From: Tetramitus jugosus
Lineage: Eukaryota; Protista; Heterolobosea
Length of the DNA stretch: 64,000 nt
Direction: 5' to 3'
Assembly (NCBI GenBank): GCA_937625935.1
Contig: OW569353.1
Span: 124,001 to 188,000 of the forward strand
The notes beneath the pieces were generated by a model. That model did not search any database and had not been told where the DNA came from. It saw nothing but the letters and a program-made list of their open reading frames with translations. The translations under genes and the position numbers were made by a program. Below are positions 3,178-17,645 of this stretch, piece by piece; positions within the stretch are counted from its first letter, which is position 1; the number at the start of each line of letters is the position of its first letter.

Positions 3178-3861
3178 ATGTCTGCTGATCAACAAACACT
3201 GACCGCCCAGATTCAATCAACCATCAATCAGTTCGTCCAAGATGCCGCACTCGACAGCTATCTTGTTTTTGTGCAAGACGGAACCATTTTGACACAATCG
3301 GAGAAATTAAACAACGTATCGGTGGAGGAGACAAGGTAAGATTATTGCTGCTTTTTTGCATGTCGATGGACGACGTACAGCATACCACATATGTTGCAGT
3401 GTTGCATTTCCCTGCCTTTTTTGTTGTTGTTGTTGATATCATCATCACCATGTTTAACTAACAAGCGCGTCATCCGTCTCATGCTTTTGCACTTGACTTT
3501 TGTTAATTTGTTTTCATTTGAATGTGTGATGTGAACTGGGATGGGATGCATCGTTTGTAGAAATCTGGTCAAGTTGTTTGATGATGAACAAGATGCATTT
3601 ACCAATGGTATTGCATTCAACAGTAAGATTTATGAAGTTCATAGATGGTTCGACAAGAATGAACCAGCGCTCATTTATGGTCGAACAACGATTGCTTCTC
3701 AAGATTCATTGGACAGTGAGGGATGTGCCATTTGTAGAACCAAGGCGTTGACCTCCAACGTGAATGTATATATTGTTGTTGTCTATAAGATGCCTACTCT
3801 GGCTGCCAAGGCTGTTAGTAAGTTGGTCGATTACTCAAAGAAGGTTGTGGAGCCATTGTAA
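3178..3861 (+). CDS. profilin-like protein, 2 exons (3178-3335, 3561-3861), about 152 aa
   Basis: Intron GTAAG 3336 to TTTGTAG 3560 joins 'MSADQQ...DSYLVFVQDGTIL...EETR' in frame to 'NLVKLFDD...GIAFNSKIYEVHR...LIYGR'; size and pattern fit the profilin fold. Confidence 0.6.
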
Positions 3862-3888: not shown

Positions 3889-6800
3889 TTAAATGTGTTC
3901 CATAAAGGTGAGATCAGCAGAGGCTGGAATGGCTTTGGATGCTTGGATTGCATTCAAATGATTCTGAATAAATAATTTAAAGTCGGCATAGGTCATTGCC
4001 TTTCTGAACAAATCGTCCCATAGAGCTTGCTTCAATCGCACATCGTTTGGATTGGCAGATAGCTTATTTACATAGTAGATGTTGGTTTCTGTTTTGGTCG
4101 TGGCGGATGGTGCTGTTGTAGAAGTGGTAGAAGAAGCGGATGGTGCAGAAGTTGTTGCTGTTGACGAGGTGTTGCTGATGTTTGCTGGAGATAATCGAAT
4201 TGGTACTTGCTCTGTTCTCATCTCTGTACCACCCACTAGGCAATTGTCAATAATACAGAACGTACCAGGCAGCAGCTTCTGTATCTCATCGAGAGTATCG
4301 AGAATTACGACAAACACCTTGACCTTGCTCTCCTCATGTGCGTTCAATGTTTGGACAATCTTTTCAATATGGAGATTCACATTCGGCATATTTTCTTGTT
4401 GAGTTTTAACATTGTTCTCCTTATCCGTCGCAAACAGTTGTTGATGGAAGACAAACACTCGTTCAATGATGAGATCAGGATTCTTCTCGAGCAGTCTCTT
4501 GTTCATGTCAGCAATTTCATTCACGGTTTCAAACGTGAAATATGGAGAGCTCGATTTCTGGCTATGGTATGGTAACCAAGAGTGAACAGGAATGCAGCCA
4601 CGGTAGCACTTTTCAACGGTGCTCTCCAAGTCGTGAAGTCGTACTCTATGTCGATCAAAGAACTGAGAATTTGTTTCAATTTTTCCTTCAGAGAAGAAGG
4701 TTGTTAATGCACTCTCATAGCACTTGCAAATCTTTTGATACTTCTCCAGGAGTGTGTGTCTTGATCCCTCCGATAGCTCCTCCAACTCTGTTAGAGGTGG
4801 AATGGATACGAGTGAAGACAAGACGTTCTTGAATCCGCTGAGCATTGGATTCAAGTGGTGCTGTATCGACTTCATATTATCCTCTGACTCAAAAGAGAGC
4901 AAAGGATCTGTTAGAGACATCATTCGTGACGCGTCTTTGTAGGACGAGTTGTTTGTAGGAGGTTGGATAAGTGGTTGTGAAGGTGCAATCTCTGATGGCA
5001 TAAGTCCAGGTTGATGCTTGAGAATATATTCGTCCAGGGTGATTGATGCATTGTGCAAATAGACCCAAACAGAGTAGTACATGTCCGCTACCGTCTTTCT
5101 GTTGAATATTAAGACAGATTTTGGATAGTCGTTCTCCATGTATAGCACATGACACAATCGAGAGTCAATGATGGAAAAGTTTCTTGGTATTTCCTTCCTC
5201 TTTTCAACGTCGTCCTTGAAGACGACTCGAACATCAATTCCTGACAGTTTGTGGTACTCCATAATCTTCAAGAGATTGATTATTTCAGAGCGGATCCTAT
5301 AGCTTCTTTCGAGAATAAATATTCTCTTGACCACAGCATTTGGATTGTTGCGCAAAAGCGATGCATTCACATCGGCTAGCTGATACGGTTTGTGTGACAT
5401 CCATTCTTCCAATGGGCTATATACACCTAGGTAGGATTGTTTCGCTGTATTGTACACCTCTGTCACATTCAATCGCATATGAGCATAGAAATCTGATCGA
5501 AGCTCTAGTGTTTGTTTCGATAGCAGATTTGAAATGGCATCTAGATAGAATTTGCTGTTCTGGAAAAACTTGATCTTCATCAGTTGTAGTAGAGATTCTT
5601 TCGTGTGAATATCACCAAGGTTCATATTCTGCAAGTACTCCTCATACACACAAACAAGAGAAAGTATCCTCTCAAGCTCAGTGTTTGGTGACTTGTGCGA
5701 GCCAGACTTTGGAATAAACATCAATTGGCCATCACCAATCTCTAAGCGCCCATACTTTGGAACTTGTCTTCCGTTTGAGTCTTTGATGACTCGTTCCTGC
5801 ACGAATTGACCTAATTGATCAGCAGTACTGAATTGAGTATTGTCGCTAATGATGTGTGACTTTGTTTTGAATCGCATGGTTTTCAAGGCAGTAATCAGAT
5901 GCCGAGTGAACAAACCCTCGGACAGAAGTGGGATATCGTTGATATCACCACTGGCACAAATGACTTGAGCTGCCTTGTTGCGTGCATATGAGGGAAGGCT
6001 TCTGAAGTATTGCAAATCATCTTGGTTCGTTCGAATCTTGAATAATCTTCCCATGTAGCAAGTATCCAGTATGTAGCAAATATGTTTTGCAGGGAAGCAT
6101 TTGTATGTATTTACAAAGCTCTCGTGAGAAATTCCAGTGTTTAGAATATTGTCTGGGTCAGCATCATAGGGAGCAATAAATCCTTCAACGTGATTATTGC
6201 TATATCGCTTAAAAACTGAGTGACCAACAAAATACACCAACACACAGTCTTCTTTGTGTATGTTTTCAGACAGAGATTCAAAGAGCTTCAGTATATTGCC
6301 TCTAGTAGCTTGTTCGTTAAATAGTGTACAGACGTTGAATCCGAACTCCTTGGATAGAATATTCATCAGATTTGTAGCATCATTCACACACTCCTTTTGA
6401 CTAGCCAGTAACGTCTTCGATTCGTAATTACTGATGGCAATTATAATAGCCCACTCTCTGCGATAAACGATACGATCAACATCGGAAGTAGGAGAGCTTG
6501 CCTCAATATCAACTGATGGAGTGCTTTCCTTGGCTCTCTTTGAGGCTCTCTCATCTATCACCAATGCTCCCTCGTACGACTTCCGCTTGCTATCAGAGGG
6601 CAGTGCCGGTGTATATTCAAAATAGAGGTCTTGGTCAGATATCGTAATATTTCCACTATGAATCTTAACCTGTACTCTGCCCTCGGATTCTCCAGGCGGC
6701 ACCTTCACAAAGATTGCATTTTGATCAATTTGCTGAATTTCAGCAGGCTTATCTCCAAAGAGAATAAAACTATGTTCTGGAGTGCCATCAATCATAACCT

Positions 6801-9078
6801 TATTCCGCTTAAATTGGATAAACACTAAATAATTACCAGAGACTGAACCACTTGGAGGAGAGATCAAGAAATTAGGTTGAGCAGGAGGATGCATATCGGG
6901 TTCCTCATCGTTGAACAAATCTTGATCTTGTTTCAATTCATCCGACGTAGTCGACGTATAGGACAAGTTTCCAAAACTACTCACTCGAGATAAACCGCCT
7001 GTCATTGGTGTGTCCAAGTCATCTGATGATCCAAACTTCTTTTTCCGCTCCTTCTTTGAGGTTTTACCACAATTAATGGCAAATGTGTTTCCAGAGTCTA
7101 CTTGGAACACGAACCAGGAATCATAAAGTACCTTGTAACGCAGTTTGCAATTCTTCTTGTTACTAGAGACAACTTTAGCTCTCAGAGGCACAAATTCCAC
7201 ATGCTTGTGAGATTCGACCGTAGGGCTGTCTTTCACTGTATAAGCATGCCTGGTGTCATCCTCGCCCTTCTTCTTCTTCTTCTTTTTCTTGGAAGCACCG
7301 TCTCCTGACTTCATAGCAGTCACTGTAGATCCAGCAATGCCCCCTCCATCGCTCTCCAAACCATTGTCCTGCTCAGAGTCATTCACAAGCAAAACTACTT
7401 CAGAAAACCATCGGTCATCACAAAACTCTGTCGTATGGCCTGATTCAACCTTTGACTTCAACTCTTCCAAATCAATAAACAAATGATGCATGGCACAAAC
7501 ATTTAAAAACGATTCAGCATGTTCCATCACAGCATTCTTCTGCATTACCATCGTAATCAATACTTCTACCCATTGTCTCAGCTTATCAATGTCCACTGTC
7601 ATGGAAGTAATAAGTGGTGTTCTTCTACGCTTTGTCACACTCTTTCCTCCAACAATAGTAGCCGGTATTTGATCTTCATTGACTTGTACGATAGGCCCTC
7701 CGCTCGTATCTGAGATGAACTCTGACCACACTTGCAACGAAGTGATCGACTTGTTGTTCATATTGCTCGCACTACTTCCACCGTTGCTATACATGTGAAA
7801 TGAGAGATCATCGTTCGAATCACCACCATTGCTACCGGCACTAGCACCACTGACCAGCACACCACCATCAGATGCCAAATCCAATATATCATCCGTGGTT
7901 ACATTCTTCACATGATGATGAGCGTGATGATGGAGTGATTGAAGTGACTGTAGAGTGTGATGAGAGTGCGGATGGTGCATGTGCCTGGTTGCTCCCATCA
8001 AATGAGTTGCGGCATTCGGTGAGATTTGAAGTCCCATTGCTGATTGAAGACCAGAGTAATCCACATATGAATCCTGTGTCGCCATCAATGATTGTGCAGA
8101 GAGACCTCTGGCTGTTGCATCATACAAGGCTGCAAAATGCTGTTGTGACGCAGAGGACGGAGCAGATGCTTGTGCGCTTGATTTACTCGTTGCACTGGTC
8201 GCTGTGGTTGCACTACTATTATTATTATTGTTACTACTATTGTTATTGTTGTTACTGTTCACATAATCAGAACTATTTGTGTCTTGAAAGAGATCAGACG
8301 GTGAAGAAAATCGATAGAGTGATGCTTGTTGACCGTCCAAGTAGGCCGTAGTCACAGACGATGATCCATTCATTGCATTCGATAAGCTCGTCGGCGATGA
8401 TGAAGGTGATACCGTAGTCGAAGAAGGTGCTGATGTTGATCCACTATGACCATGATGATTACTATTATTGTTGTTATTGTTGTTATTATTATTATTCGTA
8501 TTGTTACTCGTCACATTGGCTGGTGGACTGGGACCATATACGACACCAGCAGCAGCAGCAGCATTCAAACTAGCCAACAAATAATTCAAATTGGCGGAAG
8601 GATCCAATGAATTCATCATTGCTTGTTGATGTCTCTGTTGTTGTTCATGATAGAGGTCCAATGCACTCGCACCAGCTGATGATGAACTCTGTTGCGTTGA
8701 AAATGGTGAGTGAAAGTATTGCATTTGTTGTTGTTGCTGTTGTTGTTGTTGAGAGAATAGAGAGGCTGCCGTAGGTGATGAAAGAAGAGAGTGATGGTGT
8801 TGGTGGTTATGATGAGGATGGTGTTGATGGTGGTGGTGGTGGTGAGCATGTGGATGATGATGAGCATGGTGGTGAGGATGATGAGCACCACTTGTTGATT
8901 GTTGTTGCAAGTGATGAAGTGGTGATCTTCCTGGAGGAGAAGTCGTTGTTGCTGCTGTGAGAGGAATGAAACCTTGTTCGAATTGATTCAATTCATTGAG
9001 TGTTTGTCTGAAAGCTTGCTCTTCTTGAACATTTGTTCCACCAGAATTCAGAGCCAGATGGCTCGATGAACGTTTCAT
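3889..9078 (-). CDS. 1729-aa multidomain protein: low-complexity N-terminus, putative DNA-binding domain, IPT/TIG, caspase-like (C14) peptidase, two PLD-fold-like (DUF6879-like) repeats
   Basis: IPT 'ILFGDKPAEI...IFVKVPP...GRVQVKI...FEY'; C14 'WAIIIAISNY...NDA...LFNEQATRGNI...YFVGHS...ILDTCY'; two internal repeats 'KRIFI...VRVV...NFSIID' and 'ERVFV...VFVV...TFCIID'. Confidence 0.75.
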   Translation of the reverse strand: MKRSSSHLALNSGGTNVQEEQAFRQTLNELNQFEQGFIPLTAATTTSPPGRSPLHHLQQQSTSGAHHPHHHAHHHPHAHHHHHHQHHPHHNHQHHHSLLSSPTAASLFSQQQQQQQQQMQYFHSPFSTQQSSSSAGASALDLYHEQQQRHQQAMMNSLDPSANLNYLLASLNAAAAAGVVYGPSPPANVTSNNTNNNNNNNNNNNSNHHGHSGSTSAPSSTTVSPSSSPTSLSNAMNGSSSVTTAYLDGQQASLYRFSSPSDLFQDTNSSDYVNSNNNNNSSNNNNNSSATTATSATSKSSAQASAPSSASQQHFAALYDATARGLSAQSLMATQDSYVDYSGLQSAMGLQISPNAATHLMGATRHMHHPHSHHTLQSLQSLHHHAHHHVKNVTTDDILDLASDGGVLVSGASAGSNGGDSNDDLSFHMYSNGGSSASNMNNKSITSLQVWSEFISDTSGGPIVQVNEDQIPATIVGGKSVTKRRRTPLITSMTVDIDKLRQWVEVLITMVMQKNAVMEHAESFLNVCAMHHLFIDLEELKSKVESGHTTEFCDDRWFSEVVLLVNDSEQDNGLESDGGGIAGSTVTAMKSGDGASKKKKKKKKGEDDTRHAYTVKDSPTVESHKHVEFVPLRAKVVSSNKKNCKLRYKVLYDSWFVFQVDSGNTFAINCGKTSKKERKKKFGSSDDLDTPMTGGLSRVSSFGNLSYTSTTSDELKQDQDLFNDEEPDMHPPAQPNFLISPPSGSVSGNYLVFIQFKRNKVMIDGTPEHSFILFGDKPAEIQQIDQNAIFVKVPPGESEGRVQVKIHSGNITISDQDLYFEYTPALPSDSKRKSYEGALVIDERASKRAKESTPSVDIEASSPTSDVDRIVYRREWAIIIAISNYESKTLLASQKECVNDATNLMNILSKEFGFNVCTLFNEQATRGNILKLFESLSENIHKEDCVLVYFVGHSVFKRYSNNHVEGFIAPYDADPDNILNTGISHESFVNTYKCFPAKHICYILDTCYMGRLFKIRTNQDDLQYFRSLPSYARNKAAQVICASGDINDIPLLSEGLFTRHLITALKTMRFKTKSHIISDNTQFSTADQLGQFVQERVIKDSNGRQVPKYGRLEIGDGQLMFIPKSGSHKSPNTELERILSLVCVYEEYLQNMNLGDIHTKESLLQLMKIKFFQNSKFYLDAISNLLSKQTLELRSDFYAHMRLNVTEVYNTAKQSYLGVYSPLEEWMSHKPYQLADVNASLLRNNPNAVVKRIFILERSYRIRSEIINLLKIMEYHKLSGIDVRVVFKDDVEKRKEIPRNFSIIDSRLCHVLYMENDYPKSVLIFNRKTVADMYYSVWVYLHNASITLDEYILKHQPGLMPSEIAPSQPLIQPPTNNSSYKDASRMMSLTDPLLSFESEDNMKSIQHHLNPMLSGFKNVLSSLVSIPPLTELEELSEGSRHTLLEKYQKICKCYESALTTFFSEGKIETNSQFFDRHRVRLHDLESTVEKCYRGCIPVHSWLPYHSQKSSSPYFTFETVNEIADMNKRLLEKNPDLIIERVFVFHQQLFATDKENNVKTQQENMPNVNLHIEKIVQTLNAHEESKVKVFVVILDTLDEIQKLLPGTFCIIDNCLVGGTEMRTEQVPIRLSPANISNTSSTATTSAPSASSTTSTTAPSATTKTETNIYYVNKLSANPNDVRLKQALWDDLFRKAMTYADFKLFIQNHLNAIQASKAIPASADLTFMEHI

Positions 9079-15473: not shown

Positions 15474-17645
15474 CTACTGTGTACGTGTCTTGGAGGTTAC
15501 CTTGACTCTTTTGTTCTCTCTGATTTCGTTCCAGTATTGAATCTCTTCGGAACTGTGAGCATAAGCACATGCATGAGGCTTTCTTCCGTGATCCTTGTAA
15601 CTCGGGTGGCTCGAGCCAGCATGTTTGCACATGCTAGCCTTCCAGTTCGGTTTCATTTCAATAATTGCTTCTGCCAAACTGATTCCAGTTTTAGTTGAGA
15701 ATTCAACTCCTGACCTGAAGTTCATTTTCCCTTGCTGTATTGCAGATATGGTTTCTCTCAACTGTGAGTCGGTATACAACTGCTTTGCGACCATGGGCTG
15801 AAATATCTCATCCTCGGTTGATGCATTGCTAAGTGGAGAGGAATTGTTCGATGAAGGAGCAGAAGTATTGGAACGAATCTGCTTCTTTGTCACTTTTGAT
15901 TGTTGAGGGACTGGATCACTTGCCATGGCACTCGACAACCAAGAGGAATCAACTGCAGATATGAGTCTTGCATTATTGTATGCCTGTTTGAGTGAAAATA
16001 TTGTTCTTATGTCGTACTTGTACGTGGGCTTCTCGGGATCCAGTGACTCATTTTTTAAACCGAGAACCAAGGCACAATCAACTCTCTCTGAATTTTGATA
16101 ATCTAGGTTGATAGGCAACATCAATTGCATTTCCGCTTTTCCTGAATGTCTGGCAAAGAATGGTACAGCTAACCTTCTGTTTCTCTGTGCTTGAACTACG
16201 GAGAGCTTCAAACCAGATTCGAGTCTTCTTAAGAAAGAGTCTCTGTCTCTCTCTAACTCCTCAAATCCACCACATCTCTCTATATGTTCAAACAAGTGTT
16301 CTTGATCACTATTATGCCAATCGATTTGTAACTTAGGATCAAACTGAAACACTTCCACGGGAGCACCTTCAAAGTAATTATTGATTGTTGGAAGCTCATC
16401 ACTGGGCACAAGAGGAACATTAAGATCTGCGATTTTGATTGTATGACCTTCATCTTGTGGAGGATGAATTCTCATGACAATCTCAGAAAATTGTTGTCCC
16501 AGCGAGCTCTCGAACCTCTTACGTTGTGAGAATTCAGCTCTTGATGAGAACCACTTCAAATGCCAGCGAATAGAAGGTATTTGTACGATGTTGGTCTCAT
16601 ACGGCAGATAGGGAATCATGATACCATAAATATCTTGTGCTGCGCTTGTTACTAAGCCAGTATTCCATATTAAAATGCAGGCAGCCATTGTTCGATCCGA
16701 GCTTAATAGAGGTGGACACCACGAGTCTAACTTGTTCTTATCCGTTGGACTCAAACCCTCAACTTCATCAAGTATTTCTCTTTCTTCGACATGATAGTCT
16801 TCTGTTGCACGAACATAAGGAATCCAGAGTCCCAACACCTTATTCTCTTCTGTACACCTTCGGAATGTGTGATCCAGATAGGAGATCAGCACTTCATTAC
16901 CTGGTCCCCAATTCTCTCCTCTTGCTTTCCTAGTCAACTGGGATATCTGCTCAAAGCATTGGTCATATTTGACCAGACCAATGGTCTTCTTGGTATGACT
17001 CCAGAGAGAACATCGATTCAATGGACCTGGAGGTACGTAGCTCCACTCAGACTCTTTCATGGGTTCATATACCGCACATGATTCCTCTACTTGATCAACA
17101 GAAGATTCCTGTGCGATTGTTGCTTCCACACTTGTACCGCTTTGCTTCAACAACTGCTGAATGTGAAGCGCCACTTTTTTAGAGCTTGCAGTTGATTCAT
17201 TGACACAACAATAATCAAACAGAACACTAAATTGTTGCTTCTCCCTGATATAAGCAGCAGATTGACACAGTAATGTCGCATACTTTTGATCATTGATTGG
17301 TTCATGATCAGTCATGGCATTCATGGTTTCAGTCACACTGACGACGTTTCTGAGGAAAGCTCTCAGATCTCTCCTCGAGAAGAATGGCAGTAGATTCAGT
17401 GCATAGAGCACAACAAGAAGATCAAACAGCTGCACAGGTCTTCCCTGATGAGGTTTTTCACTCAGACACTCCACCAGATCACAGATTTCCTTCTCTGTTG
17501 CATGAAAGCAATGATGAGGCAAGTTGATCAAGGACGAGTAAACATCAGACACGTCCTGGGCGAATTCGCCATAATTTTTGTTGAGCGCCATCCCCTTAAG
17601 GGACCTTACAACATCTCCGTCGTTGTTTGCTTTCAAACTTTTCAT
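15474..17645 (-). CDS. DUF3825-domain protein with C-terminal CCCH-type zinc finger
   Basis: 'LISYLDHTFRR', 'WNTGL', 'RLAVPFF...QLMLPI', 'TIFSLKQAYNNARLI...SSWL' (DUF3825); 'WKASMC...CAYAHSSEE' (CCCH-like). Confidence 0.75.
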   Translation of the reverse strand: MKSLKANNDGDVVRSLKGMALNKNYGEFAQDVSDVYSSLINLPHHCFHATEKEICDLVECLSEKPHQGRPVQLFDLLVVLYALNLLPFFSRRDLRAFLRNVVSVTETMNAMTDHEPINDQKYATLLCQSAAYIREKQQFSVLFDYCCVNESTASSKKVALHIQQLLKQSGTSVEATIAQESSVDQVEESCAVYEPMKESEWSYVPPGPLNRCSLWSHTKKTIGLVKYDQCFEQISQLTRKARGENWGPGNEVLISYLDHTFRRCTEENKVLGLWIPYVRATEDYHVEEREILDEVEGLSPTDKNKLDSWCPPLLSSDRTMAACILIWNTGLVTSAAQDIYGIMIPYLPYETNIVQIPSIRWHLKWFSSRAEFSQRKRFESSLGQQFSEIVMRIHPPQDEGHTIKIADLNVPLVPSDELPTINNYFEGAPVEVFQFDPKLQIDWHNSDQEHLFEHIERCGGFEELERDRDSFLRRLESGLKLSVVQAQRNRRLAVPFFARHSGKAEMQLMLPINLDYQNSERVDCALVLGLKNESLDPEKPTYKYDIRTIFSLKQAYNNARLISAVDSSWLSSAMASDPVPQQSKVTKKQIRSNTSAPSSNNSSPLSNASTEDEIFQPMVAKQLYTDSQLRETISAIQQGKMNFRSGVEFSTKTGISLAEAIIEMKPNWKASMCKHAGSSHPSYKDHGRKPHACAYAHSSEEIQYWNEIRENKRVKVTSKTRTQ

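Follow-up and report, generated by a model that had tools for sequence, protein, structure and literature searches.

A heterolobosean protein with a p53-like DNA-binding candidate and a caspase fold that has lost its catalytic dyad in most lineages

Does a protein that joins a transcription-factor-like front half to a caspase fold become active by cutting itself, or is it controlled as an intact protein? The question is raised by a gene in a 64,000-nucleotide stretch of Tetramitus jugosus DNA (contig OW569353.1, positions 124,001 to 188,000; hereafter the window), which encodes a protein of 1729 amino acids (3889-9078 on the minus strand, as are all features of the gene given below). An earlier note on this DNA had proposed a self-activating protease that releases a DNA-binding fragment. 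We find that the proposed transcription-factor layout is supported by predicted structure and conservation, whereas the self-activating protease is contradicted by losses of the catalytic dyad among the orthologues. Because the cutting residues of the caspase have been lost in most relatives, a switchable gene regulator is probable, but a self-cutting one is not. The evidence is about evenly balanced for our preferred reading, namely that the protein is a Heterolobosea-wide, single-copy transcription factor with an immunoglobulin (Ig)-like fold of the p53-like/Rel-homology-region type, acting as an intact protein.

Gene structure and orthologues

The window consists of gene-dense eukaryotic DNA. 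The single long reading frame noted earlier is uninterrupted by stop codons, and the motifs quoted from it were all found in place. Searches of the 26.35 Mb assembly (56 pieces) showed that the gene is present in a single copy, and no paralogue of any of its domains was found. A contig from an oligo-dT RNA library spans 3905-7511 with no gap or joint, and a contig from a second RNA library spans 4189-8442. Jointless contigs on the gene were obtained from four RNA libraries; these are no proof of a single transcript, and no split of the frame was seen in them. The strain differences, among those listed, were 38 synonymous versus 2 non-synonymous. No transmembrane or signal segment was found in seven orthologues (maximum hydropathy 1.24).

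The same domain order was observed in Naegleria lovaniensis, N. fowleri, Willaertia magna, Acrasis kona and five metagenomic contigs, at 37-68% identity to the T. jugosus protein (the query). The gene model of A. kona (GCA_026419775.2, AKO1_010790) lacks the first domain because its annotated start is too late; the whole domain preceding the IPT domain is present in frame upstream (L010:5341-6001). A frame change at the start of the first C-terminal domain, C1, in the Naegleria-like metagenomic orthologue P0015 (L009:4482-4520) is probably an assembly error or a short intron. The neighbouring genes for XPC, an EF-hand light chain, profilin and Mpv17 are common to close relatives, and the gene is therefore a resident nuclear gene.

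The caspase and C1 domains are bacterial in appearance, as would be expected if the frame were an artefact of read-through from a neighbouring gene, mis-assembly or bacterial contamination. However, this explanation has next to no probability and is refuted by nine independent orthologues, complete or nearly so, in which the domains follow one another identically, by the synteny with eukaryotic neighbours, by the unbroken RNA-library contigs and by the strong synonymous bias. The orthologues are named in databases as hypothetical, IPT/TIG-containing, or caspase p20-containing or caspase-family proteins. Literature searches did not identify a description of the architecture, with a mention in subscription journals being possible. 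The architecture is both real and conserved, and it is apparently undescribed.

Loss of the catalytic dyad in the caspase-fold domain

Residues 872-1125 (5704..6465) form a C14 caspase-fold domain of the bacterial, orthocaspase-like type. The match to PF00656 (E 5.5e-15, 56.1 bits versus a cut-off of 21.4) agrees with the caspase-like domain recognized earlier, and a match to NF047832 fell below the cut-off. The nearest matches found were bacterial caspase-family domains with 22-32% identity. In a tree of caspase domains, the 11 orthologues (query included) formed one group (98/100) that did not include the metacaspase of this genome; the branches are long and no donor is named. None of the bacterial caspase loci examined encodes a C1-like domain.

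As previously reported, both dyad residues are present in the query: His953 (6220..6222), followed by Ser instead of Gly, and Cys1007 (6058..6060). Across the 11 orthologues, the residues at the His position are, in order, H, L, H, L, H, H, V, V, V, H, V (5 His, 2 Leu and 4 Val), and the Cys column contains 6 Cys, 4 Phe and 1 Leu. His953 is thus replaced by Leu or Val in six orthologues and Cys1007 by Phe or Leu in five. The complete dyad is found in only four (the query, P0002, P0004 and P0005, from two clades) and is broken in seven, from three separate clades. Given an ancestor with both residues, the full-length tree suggests at least about four loss events: two in the clade of the query (P0001 and P0003), one in Acrasis and one or two in Naegleria/Willaertia. 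The breaks are due to multi-base codon changes and are present in several samples. Sequencing error behind the His-to-Leu change was ruled out, because TTG/TTA codons were seen in four contigs.

The two dyad columns are less conserved than 68% (His) and 53% (Cys) of the columns in the caspase domain. Despite the dyad losses, the remainder of the domain is still 44-76% identical; 60 of the 256 positions do not vary at all, Asp1005 among them, and 10 of the 11 orthologues have Asp900. The position after the His is Ser or Thr in all 11 orthologues but Gly in all ten outside caspase domains compared; the genome's own metacaspase has Gly there, like the bacterial relatives. Bacterial pseudo-orthocaspases have likewise lost the dyad and kept the acidic pocket (PMC6426788). 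The lost dyad together with the retained acidic pocket therefore suggests that the conserved job of the domain is not proteolysis. Judged from the sequences, the domain is probably a pseudo-protease, and some residual proteolysis may persist in the four proteins with both His and Cys, including the query.

According to the earlier note, binding of a ligand to C1 and its duplicate, C2, would drive caspase dimerization and self-cleavage, thereby freeing the DNA-binding half; this could be valid at most in lineages that keep both residues. The intact dyad in four proteins from two clades and the retained acidic pocket are consistent with such a model, and self-cleaving p53-like factors do exist, an example being MYRF. 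However, the break in P0001, whose sister P0002 keeps both His and Cys, is difficult to reconcile with it, as are the other six breaks and the absence of Gly after the His from all 11 orthologues. Moreover, the chance retention of two residues at about 56% domain identity is not unusual (~0.3, a rough estimate). We consider self-cleavage very improbable, and the least likely when ranked with control of the intact protein and cleavage by another protease.

The DNA-binding-like front half

Fold searches with a two-domain model were swamped by the IPT domain, and the domain preceding it was then modelled alone. The predicted structure confirmed a globular, beta-rich region, here an Ig-like beta-sandwich at residues 444-681 (7036..7749) and a candidate p53-like/Rel-N-like DNA-binding domain, but also revealed a helical insertion of about 50 residues (497-546) that had gone unmentioned. 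The sandwich further contains a disordered Lys-rich loop, which holds the poly-Lys run (7267..7290) previously compared with a nuclear localization signal (NLS). This run is shortened in Naegleria and absent from Acrasis-like orthologues, and is therefore not a conserved NLS.

In a wide fold search with the predicted structure, p53-like DNA-binding domains accounted for 9 of the top 13 rows and 15 of 50 rows, and in a second search for 9 of the top 12. The p53-like matches come from seven families, with alignments mostly of 113-142 residues (about 100 for Runt) in a candidate list dominated by Ig-like chains. Most of the predicted sandwich could be superposed on members of the p53-like families. 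A search of a viral fold library gave no match.

Conserved basic residues are found in three segments of the domain. The loop between strands 1 and 2 (7609..7659) contains an invariant GGKSV, with K479 and R484-R486 basic in 10 of 10 rows; a second loop (7129..7173) contains the invariant K641, R647 and K649; and the last strand and basic tail (7027..7086) contain an invariant FAINCGK and K672, resembling the strand-plus-tail that closes the DNA-binding domains of Runt, p52 and NFAT. Altogether, K479, R484-486, K641, R647, K649, K672 and K679 are basic in 9-10 of the 10 rows. DNA-binding residues are located in the strand 1-2 loop in both velvet (VosA loop A) and NF-kB (PMC3876986), and by analogy the strand 1-2 loop observed here may be the equivalent of velvet loop A and the NF-kB recognition loop.

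A profile of the domain retrieved three orthologues and nothing else from 1.84 billion representatives, and no relatives outside Heterolobosea were found via PDB sequences, Pfam or ESM features. No Pfam match to RHD_DNA_bind was obtained for eight orthologues at E<=1, nor in the genome in a search without a positive control. Velvet (PF11754), CSL (PF09271) and Spt23/Mga2 (PF25603) gave no match to the domain, the last two of these searches having no positive control.

The IPT/TIG domain recognized earlier was recovered at residues 735-826 (6601..6876; Pfam TIG, E 2.8e-6, above the cut-off). It is followed by bipartite NLS-like basic clusters (KRK ... KRAK) at residues 831-850 (6529..6588). The linker in which these are located is 39-81 residues long and otherwise variable, with basic clusters in all 11 orthologues and two clusters in most; no other conserved motif and no Gly-rich stop region was found in it. 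The low-complexity region at the N-terminus, rich in His, Gln, Asn and Ser, covers residues 1-440 (7759..9078), in agreement with the length of about 440 residues given before. Its counterparts in the orthologues are 153-338 residues long, of similar composition and unalignable, and it is a candidate activation region.

The succession of a DNA-binding-like domain, IPT and NLS thus finds support in the predicted structure, in the fold searches and in its conservation, and the evidence for a transcription-factor half is structural and of moderate strength. Alternatively, the protein would not be a sequence-specific transcription factor, and the sandwich and the IPT domain would mediate protein interactions within a signalling scaffold in the nucleus or cytosol. 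Ig-like chains do fill the candidate list, but p53-like domains, with their longer alignments, rank ahead of them, and the basic loops at DNA-contact positions and the NLS-like clusters are conserved. We regard the scaffold as unlikely.

The basic linker could also be the site at which another protease removes an inhibitory back half. Such a protease would perhaps be recruited by the pseudo-caspase, as cFLIP pairs with caspase-8; Relish is similarly cut by a separate caspase, and p105 and Spt23 by the proteasome. The layout is the same as that of p105 and Relish (PMC8677719). Metacaspases cut after Arg or Lys, and in Trypanosoma a pseudo-metacaspase is processed by a true metacaspase (PMC6426788). 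Both the His-Gly and the Cys are intact in two further C14 genes of the genome, L011 (G000:C9:524102-524803, minus strand) and L012 (G000:C41:318904-319470, plus strand), which are candidates for processing in trans. However, the linker has no conserved motif beyond the basic clusters and no Gly-rich stop region, and nothing was found that connects the protein with the other C14 genes. Cleavage in trans is a minor possibility, on a par with the scaffold. The L011 gene represents a short, stand-alone form with a frame of 271 amino acids.

A second candidate p53-like transcription factor was observed elsewhere in the genome, a low-complexity protein of 606 amino acids with no sequence similarity to the protein studied here (L028:1015-2835; G000:C26, about 438635-440455, plus strand). 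It displays a weak Velvet match (E 0.0012-0.015), and the matching domain ends in an S-x-E-F-S-V-V-S-K-P strand that we take to resemble CudA/CSL/STAT.

The C-terminal domain pair

C1 (residues 1126-1356; 5011..5703) comprises a helical linker and a DUF6879-like alpha/beta domain, and C2 (residues 1385-1706; 3961..4926) is a diverged duplicate of it. The homology of the two domains, already claimed from the sequence, was evident from hhalign (probability 99.4%, E 8.5e-22). No other part of the protein is as conserved as C1, which has 72 of 231 positions invariant and an abundance of invariant Arg, Lys, Tyr and Trp; in C2, 41 of 322 positions are invariant. Seven of 10 orthologues gave a match of C1 to DUF6879 (best E 1.3e-4, short of the cut-off), and ESM language-model features put C1 near bacterial clusters (0.90-0.95), one set of which carries DUF6879. 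A literature search returned no paper on DUF6879.

The strand-helix pattern of C1 ends in a P-x-N-F-x-I-I-D strand at the place of the HxKxxxxD of PLD proteins, a pattern that may reflect a PLD/TrmB-like fold. The HKD motif (HxKxxxxD) is absent from C1 and C2 in seven orthologues, and the pair is therefore not a PLD-type enzyme. Neither domain matched PDB sequences, and the C1 profile retrieved nothing usable from a 5.8-billion set, GTDB genomes, plasmids and phages. A Rhodococcus match to C1 (E 0.1) was an AraC-type protein with an hhalign probability of 3.8% and was dismissed as chance. C1 and C2 are possibly ligand-binding sensor domains.

Proposed mode of action and comparison with known systems

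We take the domain order, its conservation, the fold class of the front half and the dyad loss in most lineages as established, and propose that the protein acts intact. The beta-sandwich would read DNA via the three conserved basic loops, and the IPT domain would dimerize the front half for DNA binding. The basic clusters after the IPT domain would drive nuclear import, and the Gln/Asn/Ser-rich N-terminus would activate transcription. The back half would control the intact protein from the position of the inhibitory ankyrin repeats in NF-kB p105 and Relish. The caspase fold would serve as a non-catalytic interaction or dimerization scaffold, the acidic pocket of which (Asp1005, Asp900) might, more speculatively, accommodate a basic peptide, for example the adjacent NLS of the protein itself. 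Binding of a small ligand or partner by C1, together with C2, would cause a conformational change that lifts the inhibition.

The protein resembles Rel/NF-kB in having an IPT dimerization-type domain followed by basic NLS-like clusters. It differs from NF-kB p105/p100, Relish and Capsaspora NF-kB, all from Holozoa, in belonging to Discoba, in lacking an RHD profile match, an RFRY-type recognition motif and a Gly-rich region, and in having a helical insertion. In Capsaspora NF-kB, as in p105 and Relish, the C-terminal position is taken by an ankyrin inhibitor (PMC8677719). The C-terminal block here differs from that of all these NF-kB proteins in consisting of a caspase fold and two DUF6879-like domains, and no Pfam match to ankyrin repeats was found in the protein or its orthologues. 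Nor did Pfam match it to velvet (VosA, VeA), CSL/RBPJ, Runt, NFAT, STAT, Ndt80/MYRF, EBF or Spt23/Mga2, none of which has a caspase fold; the CSL beta-trefoil, the STAT SH2 domain, the Spt23/MYRF membrane anchor and the MYRF ICA self-cleavage domain are absent from it.

As in bacterial orthocaspases and pseudo-orthocaspases, cFLIP and Trypanosoma MCA4, the C14 fold is part of a multidomain protein, and the replacement of the dyad next to retained acidic pocket residues is a further shared feature. The family studied here differs from this group in that the substitutions are Leu/Val and Phe/Leu, not Tyr/Ser, that the fold is joined to a candidate eukaryotic DNA-binding module, and that orthologues of a single family differ in the state of the dyad. 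The similarity of C1 to DUF6879 in profile and language-model comparisons is weak and below the family cut-off, and the tandem duplication sets C1/C2 apart from both DUF6879 and HKD-less PLD-fold effector-binding domains of the TrmB type.

A more far-reaching reading, which we consider rather improbable, is a complete NF-kB-like switch in Discoba, a group distant from animals and fungi, with a Rel-homology-like DNA-binding half controlled within the same chain by a caspase fold and tandem ligand sensors, both of bacterial origin, ancestrally self-cleaving, still proteolytic in some lineages and a scaffold in others. If true, it would place the design of DNA-binding domain, IPT and NLS towards the last eukaryotic common ancestor, or imply that it has arisen twice.

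Amoebae of the Heterolobosea, such as Naegleria, Acrasis and Tetramitus, change form between amoeba, flagellate, cyst or fruiting body; to our knowledge, few of their regulators have been described. The gene encodes a candidate regulator, conserved and present in one copy, that has escaped profile searches. Should DNA binding be confirmed, it would represent a new family within the p53/NF-kB/STAT fold class, from a lineage only distantly related to those with a described layout of this kind, and would bear on whether the layout is ancestral to eukaryotes. The orthologues are, in addition, a natural series of repeated dyad losses from a single caspase domain, and they open a eukaryotic route to DUF6879, an uncharacterised bacterial domain.

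Neighbouring genes

Three other genes in the window were noted. A protein of 619 amino acids with a vWA-like DTTxS motif is encoded at 336-2195 on the plus strand and has no Pfam match at E<=0.1. A profilin-like gene with a probable intron (3178-3861, plus strand) is convergent with the studied gene, and its syntenic counterpart in L008 gives a weak Profilin match. Finally, a protein of 723 amino acids encoded at 15474-17645 on the minus strand combines DUF3825, a mainly bacterial domain (E 2e-27), with a C-terminal Cys/His cluster.
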